64,000 nt of DNA, from assembly GCF_036365525.1 (NCBI RefSeq), contig NC_090387.1:90065691-90129690 (forward strand), given 5' to 3'. Positions 7,410-61,830 of the stretch are shown in pieces (the stretch's first letter is position 1; every line of letters begins with the position of its first letter). Made by a program: the position numbers and the translations under genes. Source of the stretch: Heterodontus francisci. Its lineage: Eukaryota. Under the pieces are notes generated by a model. It did no database searches, was not told the origin of the DNA, and saw only the letters and a program-made list of their open reading frames with translations.

Positions 7410-10400
7410 TACTGGTCAGGGAACGCGCGGTACACTCGGAACACAGGGCCTTCCGGGAGCGGAGCAGAGAGGAGCGGACCTGTGGGGAGAGCGTGGATAA
7501 ATTGAGCTCGAAGATCGAGGCTTTAACTTCCCGGAGGGGGGAAAGCAGTCCAGGCGCGCCGCAGTTGGAAAGAAAGTCCACAGTGGCATTACAGGAAAGT
7601 TGCAAGGTGATTGGTTGGTGAGTGATAGCTGTTAGTGCCTGGAAATAGCCTAAAACAATCAGGGGAAAGTATATATTTTTTAAAAACCTGCCATATAATT
7701 GATAAGGTTAGTACCACTAAAGAGTGTTTTTTTTAATTAGTGTAATTTATTAAGGACTTTAGATTGTAGTGGGTAGTTTTTGGAGTAGAACAAGGCCACT
7801 AGTGTAATTAGTATTTTTTAATTAAGGGAGTAACTAATTAATCTAATGGTAATGGTAACGGTGTGTGGGGGCTGGGTGGGGGAAGACTGGGAGAGCCATA
7901 ATGGTAGGAGATTCAATTGTAAGGGGAACATACAGGCGTTTCTGTGGCTGCAAACAAGGCTCCAGGATGATATGTTGCCTCCCTGGTGCTAGGGTCAAGG
8001 ATGTCTTAGAGCGGCTGCAGGACATTCTGAAGGGGGAGCGTGTACAGCCAGTGGTCGTGGTACATGTCGGTACCAATGACATAGGTAGAAAAAGGGATGA
8101 GGTCCTGCAAGGTGAATTTAAGGAGTTAGGAGGTAAATTAAAAAGCAGGACATATAAAAAGTTGTAATCTCAGGATTACTTCCTGTGCCACGTGTTAGTG
8201 AGCATAGGAACAGGAGAATAGACCAGATGAATGTGTGGCTGGAGAAATGGTGCAGGAGGGAGGGTTTTAGATTCCTGGGACATCGGAACAGGTTCTGGAG
8301 AAGGTGAGACCTGTACAAGCGGTATAGGTTACTCCCAGGCAGGAGCGGAACTGATGTCCTTGCAGAGTTGTTTGCTAGTGCTATTGGGGAGGATTTAAAC
8401 TAAAATGTCAGGGTGATGGGAACCTGAGCGGGGAGACTGAGGAGGAGGAAATGAAAGACAGGAAACAAGAAGGCAAAAGTGGAAGGCATAGATAGAAATC
8501 AAGGGCAAAAAACAAATTGGGCTATATGCGAAATAATGCTAAGATGACTAAGAATGTTAAAAAGACAAGCCTAAAGGCATTGTGTCTCAATGTGCGAAGC
8601 ATTCGCAATAAGGTAGGTAAATTTACCACGCAAATAGATGTAAATGGATACAAAGTTGCAATTACGAAGACATGGCTGCAGGGTGACCAAGGATGGGAAC
8701 TGAACATTCAAGGGTATTCAATATTTAGGAAGGACAGGCAAAAAGGAAAAGGAGGTGGAGAAGTGTTGTTAGTAAAAGAGGAAATCAATACAACAGTGAG
8801 TAAAGATATTAGCTCAGAGAATCCTGATGTGGAATCTGTATGGATGGAGCAAAGAAACACCAAGGGGCAGAAAACGCTGGTGGGGGTTGTATATTGACCT
8901 CCAAACAGCAGTGGTCATGTAGAGGATGACATCAAACAGGAAATTAGAGACGCATGCAATAAGGGTTCAACTGTAACTATGGGTGAATTTAATCTACATA
9001 TAGATTGGGCAAACCAAATTAGGAATAATACTGTAGAGGAGGGATTCCTGGTGTGCACACGTGATGATGTTTTGGAGCAATACGTTGAGGAACCAACTGG
9101 AAAACAGGTCATCCTAGACTAGGTATTGTGTAATGATAAAGGATTAGTTTAGGGATTGATTAAGAAGGGGAAAATAGAGCATGAGAGTAAGCTTGCAGAG
9201 AACATAAAAACTGACTGTAAAAACTTCTATAGATATGTGAAGAGAAAAAGATTAGTGAAGACAAATGTGGGTCCCTTACAGTCAGAACCGGGGGAATTTA
9301 TAATGCGGAACAAAGAAATGGCGCACCAATTAAATGCATACTTGGTTCTGTCTTCACAAAGGGGGAGACAAATTACCTCCCAAAAATGTTGGGAATCATA
9401 GGATCTAGTGAGAAGGACAAACTGTATGAAATCAGTATTAGGGAAGTGGTGTTAGTGAAATTGATGGGATTGAAGGCCGATATATCCCCAGGTCCTGAAA
9501 CTCTACATCCCAACGTACTTAGGGAAGTGGCCCTAGAAATAGTAGATGCATTGCTAGTCATTTTTCAAAATTCTATAGACTCTGGGACAGTTCCAACGGA
9601 TTGGAGGGTAGCTAATGTCACCCCACTATTTAAAAAGGGATGTAGAGAGAAAACAGGGAATTGTAGTCCAGTTAGCCTGACATCAGTAGTGGGGAAAATG
9701 CTGGAGCCCATTATAAAAGATCTAATAGCAGAGCACATGGAAAACAATGACAGGATCGGACAAAGTCAACATGGATTTACAAAAGGGAAATCATGCTGGA
9801 CAAATCTACTGGGATTTTTTTAGGATGTAACCAATAGAATAGATAAGGGAGAACAGTGGATGTGGTGTATGTGGACTTTCAGAAGGCTTTCGATAAGGTC
9901 CCACATAAGAGATTAGCGTGCAAAATTAAAGCACATGGGATTGGGGGTAAGGTACTGACATGGATAGAGAATTGGTAGGCAGACAGGAAACAAAGAGTAG
10001 GAATAAACGGGTCTTTTTCCAAGTGGCAGGCAGTGACTAATGGGGTATCACAGGGATCAGTGCAAGGACCGCAGCTATTCACAATACATATTAATGATAT
10101 AGATGAGGGAATTAAATGTAATACATCCACGTTTGCAGATGACACAAAGCTGGCTGGGACTGTGAGCTATGAGGAAGATGCAGAGAAGCTCCAGTGTGAT
10201 TTGAACAGGATAAGTGAGTGGGCAAATAAAGGGCAGATGCAGTATAATGTGGATAAGTGTGAGGTTATCCACTTTAGTGGCAAAAACAGAAAGGCAGATT
10301 ATTATCTGAACGGCAATAGAATGGTAAAGGGGGAGGTGCTGCGAGACCTGGGTGTCCTTGTGCACCAGTCGCTGAAAGTAAGCATGTAGGTGCAGCAGGC

Positions 10401-11057
10401 AGTTAAGAGGCAAATGGTATGTTGGCCTTCATAGCGAGAGGATTCGAGTACAGGAGAAAGGATGTCTTGCTTCAATTATACAAGGCCTTGGAGAGACCAC
10501 ATCTGGAGTATTGTGTGCAGTTTTGGTCTCCTTATCTGAGGAAGGATGTTCTTGCTGTGAAGGGAATGCATCGAAGGTTCACCAGACTGATTCCTGGGAT
10601 GGCAGGACTGATGTTTGAAGAGATAGTGGGTCGATTAATATTGTATTTGCTAGAGTTTAGAAGGATGAGCGAGGATCTCATAAAAACCTACAAAATTCTA
10701 ACAGGATTGGACAGAGTAGATGTAGGAAGGATGTTCTCGATAGCAGGGAAGTACAGGACCAGGGGTCACAATCTAAGGATAAGGGGTAAGCCATGTAGGA
10801 CTGAGATGAGGAGAGATTTATTCACCCAGTGAGTGGTGAACCTATGGAATTCTCTACCACCAGTTGAGGCCAAATCATGAAATATATTCAAGAAACAGTT
10901 AGATATAGTTCTTGGAGCTAACGGGGAAAAGGGTTATGGGGAGAGAGCGGAAACAGGGTACTGAGTTTATATGATCAGTCATGATCGTATTGAATGGCGG
11001 AGCAGGCTCGAAGGGCCAAAGCGCCTACTCCTGCTCCTATTTTTCTTTGTTTCTATG
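7410..11057 (+). mobile_element. Near full-length decayed CR1 LINE (ORF1 SGNH esterase, ORF2 APE + RT; internal deletion near 9150)
   Basis: IMVGDSIVRG..CLPGARVKDV..VVVHVGTND (esterase); CLNVRSIRNK..ITKTW (APE); DWRVANVTPLFKKG, GVSQGSVQGP, FADDTKL (RT). Confidence 0.92.
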
Positions 11058-22235: not shown

Positions 22236-25200
22236 CTAAATATACCACAAACAGCATGGGACCCAACATTGAGCCCTGTGGAACGCCACTGGAAACGGCT
22301 TTCCATTCACAAAAACATCCATCGACTTCTACCCTTTGTTTCCTGTCACTGAGCCAATTTTGGATCCAACCTGCCACATTCCCCTGCATCCCATGGGCTT
22401 TCATTCTACTGACCAGTCTGTCATGCGGGACCTTGTCAAATGCCTTACTAAAATCCATGTAGACCACATCCACTGCACTACCCTCATCAATCCTCTTGTC
22501 ACTTCCTCAAAGAATTCAATTAAGTTAGTAAGACTTCACCTTCCCTTAACAAATCCACACTGACTATCCCTGATCAGCCCGTGCCTTTACAAGTGGCAAT
22601 TTATCCTGCCCCTCAGAATTGATTCTAATAATTTACCCACCACAGAGATCAGACTGACCGGCCTATAATTATTTGGCCCATCCCTCGCACCCTTTTTAAA
22701 CAATGGTATAACGTTCACAGATCTCCAATCCTCTGGCACCTCTCCCGTACCCAGTGAGGATTTGAAGATGATCCTCAGTGCATCTGTTATTTCCTCCCTG
22801 GCTTCCTTTAACAACCTGGGATGCAATCCATCCAGCCTTGGTGATTTATCCAATTTCAAGGATGGCAGACCCTCCAGTACTTCCTTTCTCATTATGCAAA
22901 TCGTATCTAATATTTCACATTCCTCCACTTTTACTAAAATGTCTGCATCATCCTTCTCCTTTGTGAAGATAGAGACAAAAAAACTCATTAAGAACCCTGC
23001 CCACATCATCTGCTTCCACGTGTAAGTTCCCTTGTACATCTCTGATAGGCCCTAAACTTTCCTTAGTTATCCTGCTACTCATAATGTACTGATACGACAT
23101 CTTTGGGTTTTCCTTGATTTTACCAGCCAATATTTTTCATAAGCTCTCTTTGCTTTTCTATTTCCTTTTTATTTCACCCCTGCACTTTCTATACTCCTCC
23201 AGGCTTTCTAAAGTATTGATCGTCATAAGCTTTCTTTTTTACTGCTTCACAATACCCTGTAAGCCTCTAGATAACCAGAAGGCTCCAGATTTGACCGTAC
23301 CACTCTTTATCTTTCTGGGGCATGCCTACACTGTGCCTGTAGAATCTCGCCTCCCACTAGTTGGCAATGATTTTACTTCCAGTAGCTGTATCCAGTCCAC
23401 ATTCGCCAGATTGACTCTCAGTTTTGTAAAATTTGCCTTCCCCCAATATAAAACTTTAACTCCTGTCTTATTTTTGCCCTTTTCCATGATTATACAAAAT
23501 CTAACTGTATTATGATCGCCATCTCCAAAATGATCACCCATTGCTACTTCATCTACTTGCCCAACTTCATTACCGAAGACTAAGTTTAGAATTGCGCCCC
23601 CTCTCGCTGGGCTTGTGACGTGCTGGCTAAAAATGTTCTGTTGAATGCAATTCAAGAATTTTCTGCCCTCTGTGCCCTTCACACTGTTTGTTTCCCAGTT
23701 GATATGAGGTTGTTGAATCCAACTATTATTGCCCTACAGTTTGTAAACTCTGCAATTTGCCTACATATGTGTTCCTCTATTTCCCCCTCACTATTTGGGG
23801 GTCTATAGTACACTATAGTACTCGCTGCCCCTTTTTTATTTCTGATCTCCACCCATATAGCGTCATTTGATGATTCATTTAGCGTACCACCCCTCTTCAC
23901 AGCTGTTATTGATTCCTCAACTAATAATGCTACACCCCCTCCTTTTTAACCCCTCTCTATCTCGCCTGAAAACTCTGTTTCCAGGGATGTTGAGCTGTCA
24001 TTCTTGCCCCCACTTTAAGCCAAGTTTCTGTTATAGCAACAATATCGTGTTGCCATGTGTCGATCTGTGCCTTCACCTCATCAGCTTGATTTACTGTACT
24101 CATTGCATTTAAATAAATGCCTTTTAACACTGCCAAATTCCTGTGCTGCACACTTTTTAACATTTGCTTCTTCTGCCTTTCTGACCCACTCGCTAATTTT
24201 CTGCCATCCATTCCCTGGCCTGAAATCCTTGTCATCCTACAGCCACCTCCCCGTAATGGCTATCAGATCATATTTATTTACTTCAATGTGAACTATGAGT
24301 TTGTCTACTTTGTTAAAAATGCTTCATGCATTCAGATACAGACACATCAGCTTTGTCTTTTTGTTGTTGTTGTAACATCTAGTCTCGACTGTTGGTTTAT
24401 TCTTAGATTTTTTCGCTCTGTCCCTTCCTGCCATTCTTGACCTTCATTTCCCATATTACCATTTGTTGCCCTGCCGTGACTCTATCCCTTGAATTTCTAC
24501 ATTTACCCAAACTTGTTCTCTCCCCACACTTCCCCTGTTTCGTTTAAAGCCCTCTCTACTGCCCTAGTTGTACGGTTTGCTTGAACACTGGTCCCAGCAC
24601 AGTTCAGGTGAAGTCTGTCACAACGGTATAACCCCCATTTTCCCCAGTACTGGTGCCAGTGCCTCACGAAGCAAAACCCACTTCTCCCATACCAGTCTTT
24701 GAGTCATGTAATAATTTCACTAATCTTATGTGTCCTCTACCAATTGGCACATGGCTCAGGTAATAATCTAAAGATTATTGCTCTTGAGGTTCTGCTCTTC
24801 AATTTGGTGGCTAGCTCTTTATACTGTCTAAGAAGAAGCTCTTTTCTCGTCCTACCTATGTCGTTGATACCTACATGGACCAGAACAACTGGATCCTCCT
24901 CGTCCCACTCCTAGTTCCTGCCCATCCCTGAGCAGATGTCCCGAACCCTGGCACCAGGCAGATAACACCGCCTTCTGGACTCGTGCTCTCGGCTGCACAG
25001 AACAATGCCAATCCCCCTCACTATACTATCCCCTAATTTTTTATTCATGGGATGTGGGCGTCTCTGACTAGGCCAGCATTTATTGTCCATCCCTAATTGT
25101 CCTTGAACTGAATTGCTTGCTAGGCCATTTCAGAGGCCACTTATGAGTCAACCACATTGCTGCGGGTCTGGAGTCATATGTAGGCCAGATCAGGTAAGAA

Positions 25201-25694: not shown

Positions 25695-26020
25695 TGGATT
25701 AGAGATACAGCACTGAAACAGGCCCTTCGGCCCACCGAGTCTGTGCTGACCATCAACCCCCCATTTATACTAATCCTACATTCCTACCAAACATCCCCAC
25801 CTGTCCCTATACTTCCCTACCACCTACCTATACTAGTGACAATTTATAATGGCCAATTTACCTATCAACCTGCAAGTCTTTTGGGTTGTGGGAGGAAACC
25901 GGAGCACCCAGAGAAAACCCACGCAGACACAGGGAGAACTTGCAAACTCCACTCAGGCAGTACCCAGAATCGAACCCGGGTCCCTGGAACTGTGAGGCTG
26001 CAGTGCTAACCACTGCGCCG
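25695..26020 (-). mobile_element. HE1-like V-SINE
   Basis: Reverse complement of the 29101 copy, including the tRNA-like head. Confidence 0.85.
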
Positions 26021-31299: not shown

Positions 31300-33499
31300 T
31301 AACATAACTTTCTTCTTTTTGTAATCTATATCCCTCTTAATGAAGACGAGGAAGCTGTATGCTCTATTAACCACGCTCTCAACCTGTCCTGCCACCTTCA
31401 GTGCACCTTATGCACATATAAACTCAGGTCCCTCTGCAGCTGCAACGCTTTTACAATTGCACCCTTTGCTCTATATTGTCTCTCTGTGCTCTTCCTACCA
31501 AAATTAATCACTTCACACTTCTTTGCATTAAATGTCATCTGCCACCTCTCTGCTCATTCCACAACACTGTCTCTGTCCTTTTGAAGTTCCACACTATCCT
31601 CTTCACAATTCACTAAGTTTCCAATTTTCGATTCATCCACAAATTTTTAAATTGTGCCCTGTGCACGAAGGATTAGGTCATTAATATATAGATGGAACAC
31701 TGATCCTTGTGGAATTCCATTACAAACCTTCCTCGAGTCTGAAAAACATCCATTGACCAGTATACTTTGTTTTCTGTCAATCAGACAATTTCGCATCCAT
31801 GTTGCTGCTGTCCCTTTTATTCCATGAGCTATAATTTTGCTCACAAGTCTGTTGTTCGACACTTTATCAAATGTTTTTTAGAAGTCCATGAACACCACAT
31901 CAACAGCATTACCTTGAACAACCTTCTCTGCTACGTCATCTAAAACGTCCAAAAATTTACTTGAATATGATTTGCCCTTCCGAAATCCATCCTGGCTTTC
32001 CTTAATTGACCCGCATTTGTCCAAGTGACAATTAATTTTGTCCCTAATTATCATTTCTAGAAGCTTCCCCACCACTGAGGTTGAACTCACTGGCTTGTAG
32101 TTGCTGGACTTATCTTTACTCCCTGGGTAATAATGTTCTGATTGGGCATAGTCAACATGGATTTATGAATGGGAAATCCTGCTTGACGAACTTGTTGGAG
32201 TTTTTTGACAATGTAACCAACAGAAATGATAAGGGGGAGTCGGTGGACGTAGTATACTTGGATTTCAGAAGACTTTTGATAAGGAACCCCCACAGTTAGC
32301 AAAATTAAAGCACTTGGAACAGGAAGTAATATACTGGCATGGATTAAGGATTGGTTAACAGGCAGAAAACAGAGAGTAGGAATAAACGAGTCATTCTCAC
32401 ATTAGCAGGCTGTGACGAGCAGGTACAGCAAGGATCAGTATTTGGGCCCCAGCTGTTCACAATATATATCAATGAATTGGATGTGGGGACCAAATGTAAT
32501 ATTTCCATGTTCACGTATGACACAAAGTTAGGTGGGAAAGAGTGTTGTGAGGAAGATGCAAAGCGGCTTCAAGGGGGTTGGGACAGACGTAATGAGTGGG
32601 CAAGAACGTGGCAAGTGGAATATAATGTGGAAAAATGTGAGGTTATCCAATTTTGTAGAAAGAATAGATGTGCAGAGTATTTCTTAAATGGCAATGGATT
32701 TGAAAGTGTGGATGTACAAAGGGACTTGGGTGTGCTAGTCAATAAGTTACTGTAAGCTGATATACAGCTGGAGCAAGCAATTAAGAAGGCTAATGGCATG
32801 CTAGCTTTTATCGCAAGAGGAATTGAGTACAGGCATAGTGAGGTTTTACTTCGGTCGTGTAGAACCTTAAGTGGACCGCACATGGAGTGCTGTGTCATAG
32901 AGGGAGTGCAACAAGGGTTCACCATACTTGTTCTCGGATGGCAGGACTGTCCTATGAAGAGAGATTGGTAAAACTGGGCCTTTATTCTCTAGAATTTCGA
33001 GGAATGAGAGGTGATCTCATTGAAACCTACAAAATACTTAAAGGTATGGACAGGGTCGATGCAGGTAAAATGTTTCCCCTGGTTCAGGAGTCTAGAACCA
33101 GGGTACGCAAATTCAAAATAAGGGGGAAGCCACTAAGGACCGACATGAGGAGAAATTTATTTTTTAAATTTTTTTTTTATTTGGAGATACAGCACTGAAA
33201 CAGGCCCTTCAGCCCACCGAGTCTGTGCCGACCAACAACCACTCATTTATACCAATTCTATATTAATCCCATATTCCCTACTACATCCCCACCATTCTCC
33301 TACCAGCTACTTACATTAGGGGCAATTTACAATGGCCAATTTACCTATCAACCTGCAAGTCTTTGGCTGTATTCAGAGAATTGTGAATCTTTGGAATTCT
33401 CTACCCCAGAGGGCTGTGGAAGCTCAGTCATTGAGTATGTTTAAAGTAGAGATTGACAGATTTCTAAATACAAATGACATAAAGGGATATGGGGATAGT

Positions 33500-33625: not shown

Positions 33626-34330
33626 TTCCGGGGGCGTCCGATCGTCGCTTTGACTTGGGCCAGCAACAGGCCCCCGGCTGCAACACGGGAGCGTCGTCAA
33701 TATCAGAGGAAGCCCGAACAGAAATACAAATGGGTCAAAATCAGAGTGGATTGGAGGGATAGGTAGAAGTCCCGCCCTGAAGGAATCTGACCCAAAGCCG
33801 AGAATCCATCTTCTTATGACCCTCTTTACTTGGAGATCTGCATTATCACCGCATTCTTGCTGTGAACCCATCCCGCATGGATAATAAAGACCAAAGGAAG
33901 AAAATACCGGCCTGGTAGGGACCAAGTCATGTGGACGAGGTTAAGCTCAAAATATATTCTTTCTCAAGCGTTCAGACTCATTCCTGTTGACAATGCGACC
34001 CTCCTATCCTATTCCCCATTCCCCCACCCCTTCCTATCTATTACTTCTATATCATACAAACTGCGCCCACCTGGTGATTTCATCAACGTTCTGTGAAACT
34101 GTCACTTCCTTGATATAATTGAGATTAATCACATGTATCCCGACCAATCGGGCTTTGGTTTAACTTCAGATGATGTTCACAGTGCGCCTCTTAAACTCGC
34201 TTACCTTAAGCAGTTTGAGGCACGTGTTACCACAGCTCACCACATCATAAATTAGACCGGATTGTCTCCAAAACAGCATTTCCAAACTATCAGAGCCGCG
34301 GTGGATTGGCAGATCAATAGCCATTGAACA

Positions 34331-34376
34331 ATGTCTATGTGTCAATGCGTGTGGGCCCTGGGGATTATTTACGAAG
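34331..34376 (+). CDS. Candidate proximal leader exon of gene B (MSMCQCVWALGIIYE, phase 1)
   Basis: 46 nt, 190-bp intron to the V exon, upstream Ets (CACTTCCT 34103) and CCAAT (34144) motifs. The donor AAG|gtgttc is weak. Confidence 0.3.
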
Positions 34377-34449
34377 GTGTTCCCTGCAATTATCGGCGCT
34401 GTCTTATTTTTCCTTTTGTTTCTTCCAATCAATCTTCCATTTTTTGGTT

Positions 34450-34450
<1 letters not shown>

Positions 34451-34510
<60 letters not shown>
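34451..34510. repeat. (CTAT)n microsatellite
   Basis: About 15 perfect CTAT units. Confidence 0.97.
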
Positions 34511-34566
34511 GCGTGTCCACATATATTTTATCTATATTTTGTAACTACATGTTTAATATTTTACAG

Positions 34567-34878
34567 TTACTTCCGCTACCGTCTCGCAAACTCCTGAAAG
34601 TACCAATGTGTTGGCCGGTACAGATGTTACTTTTCATTGCAAGGCGAGCTCTGTTCAGAATAATTTAGACGTGCTTGTTTATTGGTGGAGACTTGGCGAC
34701 AATGACTTACTACAATCAGTTTCTGACGGCAGAAAACAATTCTTTCCTTTTAAAAACGGAACGGCTTCCTTTCAGATCCTCAATGTCCGGTTCTTCGACT
34801 CTGGATGCTATTACTGCGGCGTGGGATACACAAGAAACACGATCGTAAATGGAACCGGATCGAAACTTGTCGTGCTCG
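34567..34878 (+). CDS. Gene B: V-set Ig domain exon with germline-joined J-like G strand
   Basis: ttttacag acceptor, G|gtaagc donor, 312 nt phase 1/1. TVSQTP..VTFHC..VYWWR..ASFQILNV..DSGCYYC..NGTGSKLVV. Confidence 0.93.
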
Positions 34879-35679
34879 GTAAGCGGCCTTGGGGAGAGTT
34901 GCGGCTTTTGTCATTATAGAATGGTATATATCGTGTCATACGTTGTTCTGATTATTTAGTGAACTGATCCATAACGTTAATTTATGGAAGAGGAATGGGG
35001 AACATTATTTAAAATCAGCCCCCACACCATATCGCGGTCAGCACGCGCACTATGATATTTTATTTTTATTCATATATATTATTTATAAGTTATCTGACGC
35101 AAGGCTCCAGGACACTATACAGAAGACGGATCTTATGGCAAAAGAGCGGTATGCAGTAGCAGTAAGGACCTTGAATGGCTGGCAAATGAATAGAGAACAA
35201 ATTATATTTTACAACCATAACGCCCTTACGTATGCACTCTACAATTCGATTGAGAAAGCGATGAGTGCCATATGCTTGTCCTGTCACCTTCAAAGATTAT
35301 GGTCACCAGATTAAACAAACTGTTCCGCATGTTAAGTCCTTCGGTGCCCTATCGGTTGAAATTCAATTCATTGATTAGAAGACTGAGTTATTACTGTAAA
35401 AGTAATGATACTGAATATTGCGAGATGCAACCCCATGTCCCTGGGAGAGCTTTCTACATACATGGCTAAACGTTTAGCGAACCCGGACAAAACGTTTACA
35501 ATCTCTAAGTAGTTAAATAAACTCCAGGTAAGCTTACAATTCGGTCGAAGGGACTGTCTTGATCATTTCTGCACACCCGATTTGACACTCGCCTGGAATT
35601 ATGTTGTATGATTATCGAATCCAACCTATGGAATTTGATGTGCTACTCCCTAAACTGAGGTCAGACCAGGTCAATTGTT

Positions 35680-35860
35680 GAAAGCAAAATAGTGCGGATG
35701 CTGGAAATTTGAAATAAAAACAGAAAGTGCTGGATGTACTCAGCAGGTCTGGCTGCAACTGTGGGGAGAGAATGGTCATCTACCAGAAACGTTAACTCTG
35801 TTTATCTCTCCATAGATGCTTCCCGACCTGCTGAGCATTTCCAGCACGATTTGTTTTTAT
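35680..35860. mobile_element. Penelope pLTR-derived inverted-repeat remnant
   Basis: aaaaacagaaagtgctgga..ctcagcaggtc / gacctgctgagcatttccagca..gtttttat hairpin, similar to the ends of the 29474 element. Related pieces at about 16190-16300 and 45770-45870. Confidence 0.75.
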
Positions 35861-36129
35861 ACAGGTCTAATGTTGACCTTGCGATACACCAGGATGGAAG
35901 AAGCTGTGACTGGGCATTCAACTAGTTCCCACTTTTAGCTCCACGCATCATCCCCTCAAACTTCAGTTTCTGTTATTCCCTTCGAATTAAATTTCGAACA
36001 AGTTGTGCTTTTTCTGCTTTAAAACTTTTGAGGGAACATTATTTTTCTCCACTTACAAGTATCGCGGGCGCAAAGTTTCGCTTCTTTGGGCAGTAATAAT
36101 TTCCCCCGTTTTCACAAATTTACAAATCC

Positions 36130-38050
36130 TAGAATCATAGAATGGTTATAGAGTAGAAGGGTACTATTCATCCCTTCGTGTTTGTGCTGGCTCTCTGAAG
36201 GAGCAATTCCCCTAGTGTCACACCCCCGTCTCCCCTGAGCACCACCTCCACATCCGTAGCCCTGCACATTCTTATTTTTCAGATAATAATCCAATTCCCT
36301 CTTGAATGCCTCGAGTGAACCTGCCTCCACCACATTCTCAGGCAGTGAATTCCAGTGCTTGCTTTTCCTCACGTCGTCATTGTTTCTTTGGTCAATTACA
36401 TTAAATCGGTACCCTCTGGTTCTCGATCCTTTCACCAATGGAAGCAGTTTCTCCCTATCTATTCTGTCCTGACCCCTCATGATTTTGAATTCTATCAAAT
36501 CTCTTCTAAACCTTCTCATCTAAGGAAAACAGTCCCAACTTCTCAATCTATCTACGTAACTGAAGTTCCACATCCCTGGAAACATTCTCGTGAATCTTTT
36601 CTGCATTCTTCCTAACACCTTCGAATCCTTCCTAAAGTGTGCTGCCCAGAACTGGACGTAATACTCCAGTTTAGGCCACACCAGTGTTTCATAGAAGTTT
36701 AAGTTCCTTGCTTTTGTACTCTATGCCCCTATTGAGAAAGCCTAGGTTACTATATCCTTAATTAACTCTCAACCTGTCGTTCTATTTTCAATGACTTATG
36801 CATATATACACCCAGGTCCCTCTGCTCCTGCATCCACTTCAGAATTGAACCCTTTGTTTTACAGTGTCTCTATGCATTTCTTCTCCTAAAATGAAACACT
36901 TCAATCTTCGCTGCATTAAATTGCATCTGCCACTTGTCCACCCATTCCACCAAACTTTCGATGTTCTTTTGAACTTCTACACTATCTTCCTCAATGTTCA
37001 TAATGTTTCCAAGTTTTGCACCGTCTGCAAAATTTTGAAATTGTGCTCTGTACACCAAGGTCTAGATCAGGGATCCTAGCACCAACCCCTGGGGAGTTCC
37101 ACGAAAACCTTCCTCCAACCCATTAACAACTACTCTCTGGTTCCTGTCACTCAGACAGTTTTGCGCCCATGTTGCTACCGTCTCTTTTATTCCATGAGCT
37201 ATAACTTTGCTCACATGCCTGTTATGCAGCATTTTATTAAATGCCTTTTGGAAGGCCATGCACACCATTAAAACAAATTTGCCCTCAGCAATCCTCTCTG
37301 TTACCTCATCAAAAAACTAAAGCAAGTTAATTAAACAGAAATTGCCATTAACAAAACCATGCTTTCCTTCCTTAGTTAAACCATATTTGTCCAAGTGACT
37401 GTTAATTTTGTCCCGAATTATTGTTTCTAGAAGCTTTCCCGCCACCAAGGGTAAACTGACTGGCCTGTAGTTATTGGGCTTGTCTTTGCAGCTGTTTTTG
37501 AACAAGCGTGTTATATTTGCAATTCTCCAGTCTTCTGGCATTACTCATGACTCTAGGAAGATTGGAAGATTATGGCCAGTGCCTCTGCAATTTCCACTCT
37601 CACTTCCCTCAGTATCCTTGGAAGCATCTCATCTGGTCCTGGTTTGTTATCAACTGTAAGTACAGGCAGCCTATCCAATAGGTCCTCCTTATCAATTTGA
37701 AATCTTTCAAGCGACTGAACTACTTCTTCTTTCACAATGACCTGCGCAGCATCTTCTTCCTTGGTAAAGACAGATGCAAAGTAATCATTTAATACCTCAG
37801 CTATGCCCCCTGCCGCCATGTGTAAATCCCATTTTGGTCCCTCATCGGGCCCACTCCTCCTTTTAGAACCCGTTTGCTATTTGTATGCCTATAGAAGACT
37901 TTTGGATTCCCTTCTTATGTTAGCTGCCAGTCTCTTCTCATACCCTGCTTCTCTTATTTGCTTTTTCAATTCCCGTCTGAGCCTTCTATATTCAGCCTGG
38001 TTCTCAGTTGTATTATCCTCTTGACATCTGTCATAAGCACAATTTTTCTT
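36130..38050 (-). mobile_element. CR1 LINE fragment in the V-C1 intron
   Basis: PEDWRIANIT.LFK, LNDYFASVFTKE, FAD.AKLG peptides. Confidence 0.85.
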
Positions 38051-38462
38051 CTCCGTGTTAATCCTAACGCGATAGTCTGAATTAATATTACCTGCATAAG
38101 TTTTGGTCATTTACTTAAACATGACAATTATAAAACAGAAGGCAATACTGATGCTAGCGTGTGCTAAGCACACCTAAATGCCTAGACGCACTGAATTACT
38201 TTTTCCAGATACTGCAAAATGGTGCTTATCTGCACATTAGTCTGGACATTTATAGTGAGATTCTTATTGCGGATTGTTAAGGGAAAAAGTGTGTATCAGA
38301 ATTGTCGTAACATCTGAAGAACAGATCCTGAAATTCTGTCAATGATTTATTTTTGTGCCTGTGACCAATAATCAAGTGATTCTATTCAGGCAGACAGTGC
38401 ACCCAACGGGACTAAACTGGCAAAATCTAGACAATCAGTGTGTTCTTTAACATGTTCCACAG

Positions 38463-38771
38463 CATCCCCAGAACCCGTGAGACTGATCCCCAAAGAGTCC
38501 GGAACCAACTCATCTGCTCGAACCCTTGTGTGTGAAACGGCTGAGTTCTATCCGGAGTCTCTCACCTTCACTTGGTATGAAAATGACACCAACATTGTGT
38601 CGGAAATCAGCACCATTAAAAAGCTCAATTCGGAGGGAATGTATGAAGCTTCCAGCATCTTGAGAACGACACAGCCAGCCCAGAGCAGGACTGTGTATAC
38701 GTGCGTGGTGTCTCACCTCACGCTGCAGAGTCCAGCCGTGGCTGTTTACATTGCCTCCAGTTCTAACCCAG
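38463..38771 (+). CDS. Gene B: C1-set Ig domain exon
   Basis: ttccacag acceptor, G|gtgaga donor, 309 nt phase 1/1. TLVCETAEFYPESLTFTW..N.EGMY.ASS.L..YTCVVSH.TL (C1-set signature). Confidence 0.93.
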
Positions 38772-39465
38772 GTGAGATACTGATATTTGTCAGCCACTTA
38801 CTATTATAGATCCGCTTTATTTTCTATCAATCATTTTTGTTTCGGAAATAAAACGAACTTTGCAGGAAGTATATTCACAGATTGATTTAACTTGCGAATC
38901 TGAAAAAGAGATAAAGGAAGCAAACATTTCTCATCCTAAGAATAGAGTGTAATCGTTCAAAAGTAAAATGCATTAGACTAATTTTCATCAGACTCAATTG
39001 CTCTCCATTTAACACAGAGAAACGGAGTACATAGAATGACTTTTTATTCATTTTTTAAAGATTTAAGGTGCCGGTCCAGATCAGCTTCTGCGTCAGCTAT
39101 CCCGGTTTCAGTGCGATAGCAGCCGGGAGTGAAGAATGCGGCTGCAATTTGCATCCTATTGCTCTTAGCAGCAAAGTTCATGTTTGTTGTTTCAATGAAA
39201 ATGCAAAAACGTACATTTTAATCCTGCAATGTAGACGATTTGAGTGCCGTAATCAGCCAAAAGCAAGGATCAATGAAGGTTTATACCATTCACAGTCAGC
39301 GTATGGACGCACTGAAGATATAAATCGTGCAATTAACAGATTATTTTCAATAAACTGGTTGCATAACACTGCATTTAATGAGGAGCTGGTCATTTATTAT
39401 TCCTATTATTAGCCATAATAATCTTGTGATCATGATTTGTAATATCTGTATTGTGATTCTTATAG

Positions 39466-39579
39466 GCCATGGACATGTGCCCCTTTACCTCCTGATTTCT
39501 GGATGTGCAGGAACGTTAGTGATATTTCTAGCCCTCGTTACTTTCATTGGGAAGTGTTGCCAACTCAGTATCCGCAAAG
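39466..39579 (+). CDS. Gene B: transmembrane exon GHGHVPLYLLISGCAGTLVIFLALVTFIGKCCQLSIRK
   Basis: ttcttatag acceptor, G|gtaagg donor, 114 nt phase 1/1. About 23-aa uncharged hydrophobic stretch followed by K/CC/RK. Confidence 0.88.
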
Positions 39580-41700: not shown

Positions 41701-42127
41701 TTAATTCACCAAAGAAACCATCAAAAATTTAAGAGGTGTTCATGTGCATTTTGTTGCCATTTTGATGATGTTTTGTAGTTTTGAATCAGTGATCCCCTGT
41801 ACTATGGGGCGAACACATTTCAGGAACTCTAACATTAGATTTTGTTTTATGAACTGTGATCCTCAATGCGGAATTGGTTGAGACAAAGTTGGATTTCCCT
41901 GCATCCCGTGGTTCACTTCTTAATGTATGATCAATATTTGATTTACATTTCATTCGCTGCCTACGAAAATAAAGAAGGCCCAAGCCACTTCAAAGAACAG
42001 ATGCGGTTCTCTACTACATTTTCAAAAATGTTCAAAGTATAATATTATCAGGAATGTTATAACAAGCGTATTTAAATTATGTGCCATATACAATTATTAT
42101 GTGCCTGATTTATTGCTAAATGTTTAG

Positions 42128-44319: not shown

Positions 44320-44504
44320 AGCATGGAAGCGGCTCATGAAAATACATCCCGAGGATGTAAGCGAAGAGAACAAAAGGTGTAAGCAGGTGGAAAAACAAAA
44401 CAATGAGGAAGGAACTTAGGCTCATCTAACAGAACAAAGAGAGAAACTACCATCATTTAACTGAATCGTTCGGGCCGTATCTATCCGAGTTACGCATGAA
44501 TAAA
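44320..44504 (+). pseudogene. Degenerate cytoplasmic-tail exon of gene B (SMEAAHENTSRGCKRREQKV*…QVEKQNNEEGT*AHL) with AATAAA at 44499
   Basis: ttttacag acceptor, phase 0. Starts SM like the 1566 exon and shares EKQ with the 2358 exon. TAA 44380 and TAG 44417 sit at the Tyr-motif positions. Confidence 0.65.
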
Positions 44505-55069: not shown

Positions 55070-58000
55070 ATCGTTCACGGATGTGAAAGTCGCTCGAAAG
55101 TCCATCATTAATTGCCCATTCCTAATTACCCTTGAGAAGATGGTTGCAAGCGGCCTTCTTGAACTGCTGAAGTACATGTGCCATAGCTACGTTAAGGAGT
55201 GAGTTCCAGAAGTTTGACCCAGCGGCAGTGTAGAAACAGCGATATTGTTCCAAGGCAGGATGGTTCTCACGCTTCTGCTGCCCTTGTTCTTCCAGGAAAT
55301 AAAGATTGCGAGCATAGAAGATGTTGTAGAAGAAGGAATGACGAGTTACTGCAGTGCGTCTTGTAGATGGTACACACTGCTGCCACTGTGGCTCGATGGT
55401 GCGGGGTGGCGGGGTGGGGTGGGGGGGGGGGGGGGGGTGGGGGGTGGGGGGGTGGTGGGGGGCGGGGGCGAGCGGGGCCAATGAATGTTTAAGGTGGTGG
55501 AAGTCGTGACGATCAAGCAGGCAGCTTTATTCTGGGTGCTGTTGACCTTCTTGTGTGTTGTTGGAGCAGCGCTCTTCCATGCAACTGAAGAGTATTTCAT
55601 CACACACCTAACTTGCGCCTTGCACATTCTGGACAGGCTCTGGCGAGTCAGCAAGTGAGTTACTCACCACAGAATTACCAGCATCTGACCTGCTGTTATA
55701 GTCACAGTATCTTTATGGCTGGTTTTATTCAGTTTCTGGCCAATAGTAACGCTCAGCATGTTAGAGTCATAGAGTTGTGTAGCGCAGAAACAGGCCCTTC
55801 AGCCCTTAGTGTCTGCGCTGGCCATCAAGCACCTATCTATTCTAATCCAATTTCCCAGCACTTGGCCCGTAGCCTTGTATTCTATGGCGTTTCGAGGGCT
55901 CATCTAAATTCTTCTTGTTGATGGTGGGGGAATTCAGCAATGGTGATGCCATTGAATGTCAATGTGGTAAGATTCTCTCTTCTTGGAGATTGTCATTGCC
56001 TGGAACTTGCATGGCAAGAATGTTACTTGCCATTTTTGAGCACAAGCTTGAATAACGTCCAGGTCTTGCTGCATGTGGATACGGACTGCTACAGTATCTG
56101 AGAAGTTGTGAATGGTACTGAACACGGTGCAATCATCAGTGAACATTCCCACTTCTGACCTTATGTTGGAGGGAAGGACATGGATGAAACAGCTAAAGAT
56201 GGTTGGGCCTAGGACACTGCCCTGAGAATCTCCTACAGTGATGGTTTGAGCTAAGATGATTGGCCGCCAACAACCACAACCACAACCACAACCATCGTTT
56301 ATTTTGTGCCAGATATGACTTCGACCAGTGGGCGTACTTCTCCAGATTCCCATTGACTTAAATTTTGCTCAGGTTCCTAGATGCCACACTCTGCCAAATG
56401 CTACACTGATGTTAAGTTTCGTCACACTCCGTCTGGAATTCAGTTCGTTTGTCTAGGTTTGGACCAAGGCTATGATGAGGTATGGCACCAAGTGGCCCTG
56501 CCAGAACCCAACTCAGCATTAGTGAGCAGGCTTTTGCTGAATAATTGCCGCTTGATAGCACTGTTGATGACACCTTCCAGAACTTCGCTGATGATTGAGA
56601 GTAGACTGATGGGGTAACAATTGGCCGGATTGCATTTGTCCTTTTTTTTTAGTACAGGACATACGTGGGCAACTTTACAGATTGTCGGGTAGATGCCAAT
56701 GTCGTAGCTGTATTGGAACGGCTTGGCTAGGTGCACGTCCAGTTCTGGAGAACAGTCTTCAGTATCACAACTGGGATGTTGCCATGGCCCATAGCTTTTA
56801 CTGTATTCAGTGCATTCGGCCATTTCATGATATACACTGGGCGGAATGAATTGATTGAAGACTGTATCTATGATACTGGTACCTCATCCAGCCTGTGCTC
56901 CCGGCTGAAGATGGTTGCAAATACCTTTTACCTTTTGCACTGACGTGCTGGGCTCCCCCATCATTCAGGATGGGGATGTTTGTGGAGAATCCTCCTCTGA
57001 TTGGTTGTTTATCTATCAACCACCATTCACCACTGGATATAATAAGACAGCTGCAGAGCTTTGATCTGAACCACTGGTTGCGGAATGGCTTAGCTCTGTC
57101 TATCGCATGCTGCTTCGGCTGTTTAGCATACACGCAGTCCTGCCATATAGTTTCACCTGGTTGTCACCTCATCTTTGGTATGCCTGGTGCTATTCCTGAT
57201 ATGCTCTCCTGAACTCCTTATTCAATCAGGATTGGTCCTCTGGCTTGATGGTAATGATGGAGTGAGGAATATGCTGGACAGATAAAAAAAATTGTTGTTG
57301 AGTACAATACTGCTGCAGCCAATGGCCCACAGCGCATCATGGATGCCTAGTTTTGAGCTGCTACATCGGTTCTGAATCTACTCCACGTAGCATGGTGGTA
57401 GCGCCAGACAATTCGATGTAAGCATCCTCAGTGTGAAGAGGCGAGTTCGTCTCCACAAGGACGATGTGGTGTTCACTTCTACCAATGTTGTCATGGAATT
57501 TTCAACCAGTAGATTGGCAAGGACAAGATCAAGTAGGTGTTTCCCTCACTACCTGCTGCAGGCCTAGTCTCGCAGATATTTCTTGAGTCATTAGTGGTTC
57601 TCCCGAGCCACTCTTGGTGATGGACGTTACATCCCCTGCCACAGCACACATGGTCTCTTTGCTATCATTAGTGCTTCTTCAAACACCGACGAGTACTGAT
57701 TCATCAGCTGAGGGAGAACAGCAATTGGTAATCAGCAGGAGGTTTCCTGGCCCATGTTTGACCTGATGCCATGAGACATGATCGGAGGCTGGAGTTAATA
57801 TGGAGGGGCAACAAGACATACCAAGGCATGGTAATGGAGGATCCTGGGTTACTGGTTGCAATGTATGATTCAGTGAGTATTACAATATCAGAAGGTTGCT
57901 TGATTAGTCTGCGTGGCAGCTCTCCCAATTTTGGCACACATCCCCAGATTTTAAGGAGTAGGACTTTGCAGGGTCGAGTCGACAGACTGCCTTTTTTGTT

Positions 58001-59329: not shown

Positions 59330-60145
59330 CGGATCTGGGGGTCGTTGGCTAGGCCAGCATTTATTGCACATCCCCTAATTCCCTTGAGAAGGTTGTTGTG
59401 ATCTGCCTTCTTGAACTACTGCAGTCCATGTGGTGTAGGTCACCAGCACCACCAGAAGGGCGTTCCAGGATTTTGACCCAGCAACGGTAAAGGAATGGTG
59501 ATAGAGTTCCAAGTCAGGATGGTGTGTGGCTTGGATGGGTGGTGTTCCCATGCATCTGCTGCCCTTGTTCTTCTAGGTGGTCGAGGTCACCAGTTTGAAA
59601 GGTGCTGTCGGAGGAGCCTTGTGAGTAGCTGCAGTGTGTCTCGTAGATTGCACACACAGCTGCCATTGTGCAGCGGTGGTGGAAGTGCTGAATGTTGAAG
59701 GTAGTGAATGGGATATCAATCAAGCGGGCTGCTTTGTCCTGAATGGTGTCGATCTTCTTGAGTGTTCTTGGAGCTACACTCATCCAGGCAAGTGGAGAGT
59801 ATTCCATCATACTCCTGACTTGTGCCTTGTAGATGGTAGACAGACATTGAGCAGTCAGAAGGTGATTTACCTGCCGCAGAATTCCCAGCCTCTGACCTGC
59901 TGTTGTAGCCACAGTACTTATACGGCTGGCCCATTTCAGTTTCTGGTCAATGGTAATCCCCAGGATATTGGTAGTGCGGAATTCAGCAATGGTAAAAGCA
60001 CTGATTGTCAAGAGGAGATGGTTGGATTTATCTTGTTTGTGATGGTCACTGCCTGGTACTTGTGTGGCGCAAATGTAACTTGTCACTTATCACCCCACAC
60101 CTGAATGTTGTCCAGGTCTTGCTGCATATGGACACGGACTGTTTC
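59330..60145 (-). mobile_element. L2/CR1-group LINE 3' fragment
   Basis: ORF 59514-60086: LGITIDQKLKW..YKAQVRSMMEYSPLAW..IQDKAARLI. Confidence 0.88.
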
Positions 60146-61069: not shown

Positions 61070-61830
61070 TGGTGGTAGGGAAATATAGGGACAGGTGGGG
61101 ATGTGGTAGGAATATGGAATTAGTGTAGGATTAGTATAAATGGGTGGTTGATGGTCGGCAGAGACTCGGTGGGCCGAAAGGCCTGTTTCAGTGCTGTATC
61201 TCTAAAATTAAAAACTAAAAGAAAACAAATTAAGACTGAAATGAATAAAGACTCACCAGCCACTCACAAATTTCCTTGTGCTGTCTTCATTTTATTTAAT
61301 AGGCAGTTAACTGAAGTGTTTTACTCAACTTCCACTATCAATATACCTCAGATTTTAATCTGCTGAAAAATTCACAACGCATTCGCGATCTCTTGTTAAT
61401 TAATTTTAACTTTATCCCCGATATTTGATTAATTATTTGTTGATTATAATTATGAGAAATTTCCAAATTGACTTCGCTTTTATGCTAAATAATTGATCTA
61501 GTTTTTAGTTTAGTTTTAAGATACAGCACTGAAACAGGCCCTTCGGCCCACCGAGTCTGTGCCGACCATCAACCACCCATTTATACTAATCCTATATTAA
61601 TTCCATATTCCTGCTACATCCCCACCTGTCCCTATATATTTCCCTACCACCTACCTTTACTAGGAGCAATTTATAATGGACAATTTACCTATCAAACTGC
61701 AAGTCTTAGGCATGTGGGAGGAAACCGGAGCACCCGGAAGAAACCCAAGCAGACACAGGGAGAACTTGCAAACTCCACACAGGCCGGATTTGTGAGGCTG
61801 CGGTGCTAACCACTGCCGCACTGTGCCGCC
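61070..61830. mobile_element. Two HE1-like SINEs tail-to-tail (+ 61070-61215 partial; - 61500-61830)
   Basis: Match to the 29101 copy; (aaaact)n tails. Confidence 0.85.

Follow-up and report, generated by a model that had tools for sequence, protein, structure and literature searches.

A short-tailed, non-rearranging V(J)-C1 membrane gene of the horn shark and the chondrichthyan family of probable paired receptors to which it belongs

Few genes that do not rearrange join a VJ-type domain to a C1-set domain, and those few are the source material for inferring how antibodies and T-cell receptors (TCRs) originated (PMC12227049, PMC10751288). UrIg and UrIg2 are the current candidate relics of the pre-RAG ancestor, and UrIg2 has been solved as a V-C1-C2-C3 chain in a recombinant disulfide-linked dimer (PMC12227049). 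The non-rearranging VJ-type domains of NKp30 and PRARP are likewise cited as relics of antigen-receptor precursors (PMC10751288), and the SIRP family is divided into alpha, beta and gamma roles, gamma being the short-tailed, non-signalling one (PMC12975943). Here we describe a gene of the horn shark Heterodontus francisci that lies in a stretch of 64,000 nucleotides (NC_090387.1, positions 90,065,691 to 90,129,690 of the forward strand), which we call the window and whose own numbering is used throughout. An earlier note, made from the sequence alone, had read three exons between 34567 and 39579 as a germline-joined, antigen-receptor-like gene. We found that the gene is real, intact and expressed, and that it probably encodes a short-tailed, non-signalling member of a chondrichthyan V(J)-C1 paired-receptor family, acting as a surface ligand-binding module.

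Inspection of the sequence and a script check on the forward strand returned three open exons with GT..AG ends and phase 1 at every junction, placed as the earlier note had placed them. The V(J) exon (34567..34878, phase 1 at both ends, with an AG acceptor before it and a GT donor at 34879) matched Pfam V-set with an E-value of 2.3e-11 (44 bits, gathering cut-off 26), and the C1-set exon (38463..38771) matched Pfam C1-set with an E-value of 3.1e-13 (50 bits, gathering cut-off 21). The third exon (39466..39579) encodes the stalk, the transmembrane helix and the juxtamembrane segment, as judged from its translation, a hydrophobicity scan and the spliced contigs described below. One exon at each end of the gene had been missed, both of them also on the forward strand. 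Exon 1 (34289..34376) carries the 5' untranslated region and the leader; translation from the ATG at 34331 gives MSMCQCVWALGIIYE, which corresponds to residues 1-15 of the RefSeq prediction P0001, and the exon closes with one base of a split codon; its start lies at or before about 34289, the contig extending some 11 bases upstream of 34300. The last exon (44320..44504), directly preceded by the acceptor ttttacag, completes the codon for E, adds HGSGS before the stop TGA at 44337-44339, and continues as 3' untranslated region to an AATAAA at 44499-44504. Joined in a script, the five exons translate exactly to P0001, a protein of 266 amino acids. The exons were joined only for this check of equality; they were searched singly, and the identical database protein P0001 served for the full-length searches.

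Part of the window is covered by three runs (X1, X2 and X3) of one sample, which were available as contigs and not as raw reads. Contigs from X1 and X2 crossed the joints 34376/34567, 34878/38463 and 38771/39466 without mismatches on the exons, leaving out the segments 34377-34566, 34879-38462 and 38772-39465. Contigs that skip introns at GT..AG sites in this way would not arise from DNA. Past 39579, the end of the transmembrane exon, the X1 contig runs on for another 840 nt, and its loose end matches only 44320-44349. The leader, V, C1 and transmembrane exons are thus joined exactly in X1 and X2, so that the objection that no spliced V-C1-transmembrane transcript might exist falls away, and the gene provides transcript-level proof of this splice form. 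Summed contig word depth over the exons was about 110-270 in X1, 3-9 in X2 and 0 in X3, which suggests different levels between the runs, although contigs cannot measure expression.

The V exon shows the landmarks Cys40, WW55-56, DSGCYYC and the J-like strand NGTGSKLVVL. Its C-terminal end reads DSGCYYCGVGYTRNTIVNGTGSKLVVL, so that YYC and the J-like G-x-G-S-x-L-x-V strand lie in a single exon. A script scan of 34300-35100 found neither a recombination signal sequence (RSS) heptamer (CACAGTG/CACTGTG) nor the nonamer ACAAAAACC, and genome and mRNA agree in sequence; V and J come already fused in the germline, as had been proposed. In the C1 exon we found Cys143, FYP, W157 and YTCVVSH. A 7-residue stalk without cysteine leads to the transmembrane helix LYLLISGCAGTLVIFLALVTFIG, which contains no charged residue, and the helix is followed by the juxtamembrane segment KCCQLSIRK. 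The cytoplasmic tail, KCCQLSIRKEHGSGS, comprises about 15 residues and contains no tyrosine and no immunoreceptor tyrosine-based inhibitory motif (ITIM). The product is a type I membrane glycoprotein of leader, V(J), C1, transmembrane helix and short tail, encoded by an intact, non-rearranging gene of five exons; it would be displayed at the cell surface.

Four N-glycosylation sequons were present, N79 and N110 in the V domain and N135 and N160 in the C1 domain. N110 belongs to an N-G-T sequon (residues 110-112, listed at window 34896-34904) on the G-x-G bulge of the J-like strand, and 14 of the 16 aligned family members share this sequon; a glycan on N110 would occupy the surface where Ig and TCR V domains pair. 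A third cysteine of the V domain, Cys96 in DSGCYYC (listed at window 34854-34856), occurs in P0001 alone, the other six members of its orthogroup having S, F, V or I at this position. From strand alternation, its side chain is expected to face outward on the G-F-C sheet.

The family to which P0001 belongs was delimited by profile searches. An exhaustive HMMER scan of the V exon against 1.84 billion representatives returned P0001 itself at 100% identity, and among the listed representatives that were looked up by name (about 24) every protein with one V plus a C1 domain was chondrichthyan. The non-chondrichthyan matches looked up were multi-Ig proteins, namely reptile 'pIgR-like' proteins, NCAM2, hemicentin and obscurin, which score because several domains are summed. 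A profile built from 16 members gave 43 matches, 42 of them from sharks, rays or chimaeras and the remaining one a weak match from Latimeria; full-length matches to the 42 chondrichthyan proteins ranged from 1e-121 to 1e-34. The 16 members, P0001 included, share as invariant columns the V signature WW[KR]xG, DSGxYxC and [N]GTG[ST], together with one C1-set domain (FYP...W...Y.C.V.H). On this sequence evidence the family is large, multigene, unnamed and confined to cartilaginous fish.

The closest relative, P0151, is a horn-shark duplicate that is 75% identical to P0001 and lies on the same 99.65-Mb chromosome. Orthologue-like proteins are 70% identical to P0001 in Heptranchias, 68% in Scyliorhinus, 66% in Mustelus, 58% in Pristis and 51% in Leucoraja, and a Callorhinchus relative, P0159, is 40% identical. 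Short tails are common to P0151, these five orthologue-like proteins and P0159; longer, ITIM-tailed relatives include P0158 of Callorhinchus. Behind the membrane the family members differ, some having tails with 2-4 ITIM-type tyrosine motifs, others a stub tail behind an anchor with an arginine, and others a short plain tail. In combining ITIM, charged-anchor and short-tail forms, the family is composed like a SIRP-type set of paired innate receptors. Within Callorhinchus milii, P0158 and P0159 have near-identical ectodomains; the tail of P0158 has about 119 residues and at least 3 ITIM-type motifs, and P0159 has Arg and Asp in its anchor and a stub tail, so that the two would make a textbook inhibitory/activating pair inside the family.

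Automatic names conceal these relationships. In NCBI RefSeq, P0001 is called 'immunoglobulin lambda-1 light chain-like [Heterodontus francisci]', and its relatives appear as 'SIRP-alpha/beta-like', 'NCR3LG1-like', 'H-2 class II beta-like', 'tapasin-related-like' and 'CD276 homolog'. A label of the SIRP-like or Ig-light-chain-like sort had been forecast, and both occur, the former among the other names of the relatives. A literature search on PRARP, SIRP in cartilaginous fish and elasmobranch paired receptors returned no description of the family within the papers reachable. Membership in a poorly characterised chondrichthyan VJ-C1 family, as the earlier note had it, thus agrees with both searches. 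Paired receptors of the immunoglobulin superfamily with VJ-C1 ectodomains are already known, and the present family appears to be undescribed in the papers that we could reach.

We then placed P0001 within the family by a maximum-likelihood tree of 66 ectodomains, all from family members and without outgroups. P0001 fell in a clade of seven rows, supported at 99 by the Shimodaira-Hasegawa-like approximate likelihood ratio test (SH-aLRT), which comprises the two Heterodontus proteins P0001 and P0151, two carcharhiniform sharks (Mustelus and Scyliorhinus), one hexanchiform shark (Heptranchias) and two batoids (Pristis and Leucoraja). This clade is nested in family clades of 10 rows (SH-aLRT 98) and 15 rows (95), and the branches closest to it hold ITIM and charged-anchor receptors. 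All seven members have a short tail without ITIM and an anchor without arginine, the Mustelus anchor containing one lysine near its outer edge; the anchor cysteine is conserved across the orthogroup. Because the clade spans sharks and rays and is short-tailed throughout, the short-tail form predates the shark-ray split, and recent decay is unlikely. Identity within the orthogroup was 63-100% in the J strand and 62-80% in C1, against 18-81% in the CDR1-like (complementarity-determining region 1-like) loop and 30-80% in the CDR3-like loop; conservation is lowest in these two loops and in the stalk and tail. Such a pattern points to a binding domain with changing loops. P0001 and P0151 belong to an old elasmobranch orthogroup of the short-tailed, arginine-free kind.

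Taken together, these results favour a short-tailed receptor-family member without signalling of its own as the probable identity of P0001. The family couples one V(J)-C1 ectodomain to an ITIM-rich tail (inhibitory), to an anchor arginine (activating through an adaptor) or to a short tail free of motifs. In P0001, the V domain with its fast-evolving CDR1- and CDR3-like loops would be shown at the surface and bind a ligand. The tail seems too short and plain to signal, and the layout recalls SIRP-gamma, from which we infer a surface binding module without intrinsic signalling, much as SIRP-gamma is within the SIRP family. The protein might serve as an adhesion or counter-receptor molecule, or, by taking up the ligand of its ITIM-bearing neighbours, it might act as their competitor or as a decoy.

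Several points weigh against this assignment. Short tails can signal via partners; a Ser-Gly-Cys stretch in the anchor is conserved, and acylation of the juxtamembrane CC is possible. The runs are RNA only by our guess, for which contigs without introns argue strongly, and the contigs may have missed alternative last exons with motifs. P0001 has one C1 domain and SIRP has two. Against the family profile, moreover, lambda chains scored 88-95 bits in one stretch across V-C, about the same as SIRP-alpha, whose 99.8 bits came from two stretches; any homology to SIRP proper is putative.

Among solved structures, the V exon matched a lambda V, a shark NAR V and a PD-L1 V domain at 24-26 bits each and CD276 through two partial V matches of 13-18 bits each; CD276 was its top match in the PDB, at 3e-9 summed over the two V domains, and UrIg2 was not among its best 60 PDB matches. 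For the C1 exon, one unbroken match to an IgG Fab heavy chain scored 48 bits; UrIg2 came top at 7.5e-17, summed over three C domains that scored 19-22 bits each, and lambda C, SIRP and CD276 matched in the same range as these domains. By HMMER score, P0001 did not nest in Ig light chains (IgL), TCR, SIRP or UrIg. An AlphaFold model with a pLDDT (predicted local distance difference test) of 79 showed two Ig domains and a helix; it was built on 16 sequences, and its inter-domain angle is unreliable. In Foldseek, Ig light chains and TCR beta headed the ranking by E-value, whereas PD-L1 led that by TM-score (template modelling score), and in a wide fold search Rst, B7-H6, Neph1, PD-L2 and butyrophilins tied at Z 15-16, B7-H6 matching with Z 16.2 over 193 residues at 24% identity. 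The fold searches confirm a V plus a C1 domain but cannot separate families, because the scores are tied.

An alternative that we consider unlikely is that P0001 is one chain of a germline-encoded, antigen-receptor-like dimer, pairing with a paralogue such as P0151 or with itself and signalling through a membrane partner. The order VJ, C1, transmembrane helix and short tail is the layout of a TCR chain, the C1 domains of Ig, TCR and the major histocompatibility complex normally pair, and the Foldseek ranking by E-value runs the same way, as do the anchor cysteine kept in the orthogroup, the extra Cys96 in the F strand of P0001 and the presence of a duplicate in the same genome. The membrane-proximal stalk is nevertheless free of cysteine and the anchor is uncharged, the conserved N-G-T sequon sits on the G-x-G bulge at the would-be V-V interface, and SIRP and B7 show that V-C1 ectodomains can work unpaired. 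A homodimer prediction with two copies of the ectodomain (residues 17-222) returned a score of 0.00 and no verdict, and counts neither way.

Quite improbable, in our judgement, is a B7-type ligand resembling B7-H6 or CD276, that is, a ligand for NKp30-like or CD28-like receptors and not a receptor itself. Three members of the seven-sequence clade bear the NCBI name 'NCR3LG1-like' or similar, and the short tail and uncharged anchor fit a ligand. The top PDB match of the V exon to CD276 would agree with this, but it is a sum over two V domains of 13-18 bits each. The predicted extended V-C rod likewise matches B7-H6, PD-L2, butyrophilins and PD-L1, but its Z-scores are tied with those of many two-Ig proteins, and the angle between the domains is the unreliable part of the model. 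Moreover, the G-x-G J motif is invariant here and no B7 V domain is known to have it, and the tree puts ITIM-bearing and charged-anchor receptors closest.

In a further reading, P0001 is a decaying copy of an inhibitory receptor that lost its tyrosine tail to a premature stop and is on its way to becoming a pseudogene. Upstream, at 1563-1688 and 2355-2522 on the forward strand, tblastn located the last cytoplasmic exons of a neighbouring gene (98% to P0167, residues 280-321, and 89% to P0168, residues 280-335). With the motifs APYAELEI, LTYAAVSM, TEYAQLRI and VIYTEP, this neighbour is a tyrosine-motif-tailed paralogue of the same family, so that the short-tailed gene lies directly downstream of such a paralogue in the same orientation; beyond these tail exons we found no other paralogues of the V or C1 exon in the window. 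When relic tyrosine-motif exons were sought downstream of the transmembrane exon, a single weak candidate for the family's first cytoplasmic exon emerged in intron 4 (41953..42003, forward strand; tblastn E 0.055). It reads ..PTKNKEGPSHFKEQM where an ITIM member of the chimaera reads NQEGSSHYEEQM, and it also resembles the tail EEESQHFEERTM of the Heptranchias orthologue; no AG acceptor stands in front of it, and no contig among those examined covers it. The segment is possibly what remains of a once longer tail. Both the stop after six codons of the last exon and the possible, acceptor-less fossil would suit a gene in decay. The frame, however, is intact over five exons with canonical splice sites, the gene is transcribed at the depth seen in X1, and the shark and ray orthologues all keep the short tail with J and C1 conserved, which indicates that the state is old and maintained. 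We therefore regard decay as very improbable.

A germline-joined Ig light chain or TCR gene is hardly tenable, for although the RefSeq name, the lambda scores against the family profile and the germline-joined Ig clusters that sharks have could be counted for it, the transcripts show the transmembrane exon spliced straight to C1, light chains are only 23-29% identical, paralogues have ITIM tails or arginine anchors, and no bony-vertebrate IgL or TCR was among the V-exon matches looked up by name.

Repeats occupy much of the rest of the window. Intron 1, between leader and V, contains a (TATC)n microsatellite of about 60 bases (34449-34510), which was skipped as a repeat in the read analysis. 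Intron 2 is filled with open reading frames (ORFs) resembling reverse transcriptase of the long interspersed nuclear element (LINE) type (35609-38040, mostly on the reverse strand), and further LINE-type ORFs lie at 8500-10850, 22580-23700, 32350-33200, 55900-56850 and 59500-60100. Under the RNA contigs, LINE ORFs had summed word depths that ranged from the hundreds into the tens of thousands, and internal joints were numerous; this coverage represents transcribed repeats from many genomic copies. Two repeat copies on the forward strand (25885-25953 and 61705-61779) encode GGNRST.RKP.QTQGELANSTQ, which matches the C-terminal end of P0032, a family member whose predicted form has no anchor; this end of P0032 is probably a repeat mis-annotated as an exon.

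These results bring to light a large, expressed V(J)-C1 family of cartilaginous fish with inhibitory, activating and non-signalling forms, databased only under misleading automatic names. Its short-tailed, uncharged form is an old and conserved lineage of sharks and rays and not a recent wreck. Phylogenies of antigen-receptor V and C1 domains can draw on the family for comparison, and sharks may have in it their counterpart of the SIRP-type paired receptors. A bolder view, which we hold to be rather unlikely, is that the family is an independent surviving branch of the pre-RAG V-J-C1 precursor and not an offshoot of SIRP or B7; the present orthogroup would then be its 'bare', TCR-chain-shaped form, older than the shark-ray split, and a germline recognition chain that possibly pairs with its duplicate. 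The likeness to the pre-RAG ancestor that the earlier note proposed is one of architecture only.

Among the known systems, NKp30 and PRARP differ from the present gene in domain content. NKp30 has a single VJ domain and is not known to have a C domain; its anchor bears an arginine and its J-like strand an N-G-T sequon. As an identity for P0001 it was rejected on the C1-set domain and the anchor without arginine. PRARP reportedly has the layout V-C2-transmembrane with an ITIM, in a description by Fu et al. in 2019; the C1-set second domain of P0001 (3.1e-13) and its ITIM-free tail set it apart from a protein so described. B7-H6, other B7 proteins and butyrophilins resemble P0001 in having a V and a C1-like domain, a membrane anchor and a short, ligand-like tail; they differ in that the J-like G-x-G motif (G-T-G) is invariant here, and the structural scores that link them are tied with those of unrelated two-Ig adhesion proteins.

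Ig lambda and TCR chains share with P0001 the order V-J-C1, the phase-1 junctions and the G-x-G-(S/T)-x-L-x-V strand. Here, however, there is no RSS, no separate J segment and no interchain stalk cysteine, and the identity to light chains is low, as given above. The rearranging V(D)J, the charged anchor (here the uncharged LYLLISGCAGTLVIFLALVTFIG) and the connecting-peptide cysteine of TCR find no match, the stalk stretch SSSNPGHGHVP being cysteine-free. Ig light chains and TCR were accordingly rejected on the missing RSS, the transmembrane exon, the uncharged anchor and the cysteine-free stalk. UrIg and UrIg2 (PDB 9dmx) are alike in being elasmobranch and in having a germline VJ exon followed by C1; this identity was rejected on layout, V-C1-transmembrane here against V-C1-C2-C3 there, and the V-C1 part of UrIg2 scored 48.8 bits against the family profile, below the lambda chains.

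SIRP alpha, beta and gamma resemble the family both in the ectodomain, where a V domain that does not rearrange and carries a J-like G-x-G strand precedes the C1-set part, and in the split into ITIM, charged-anchor and short-tail forms. The four-tyrosine tails of paralogues may resemble that of SIRP-alpha; when such homology was sought with the cytoplasmic part of the ITIM paralogue P0010 (residues 263-377), the query matched nothing but itself, which is uninformative because the tool needs shared 5-residue words. In the PDB, both the C1 exon and the family profile have SIRP-alpha and SIRP-gamma among their best matches, and many members carry the NCBI name 'SIRP-like'. The SIRP ectodomain, however, consists of a V and two C1-set domains, whereas the spliced contigs place one C1 exon between V and the transmembrane exon here, and no bony-vertebrate SIRP was among the V-exon matches looked up by name.

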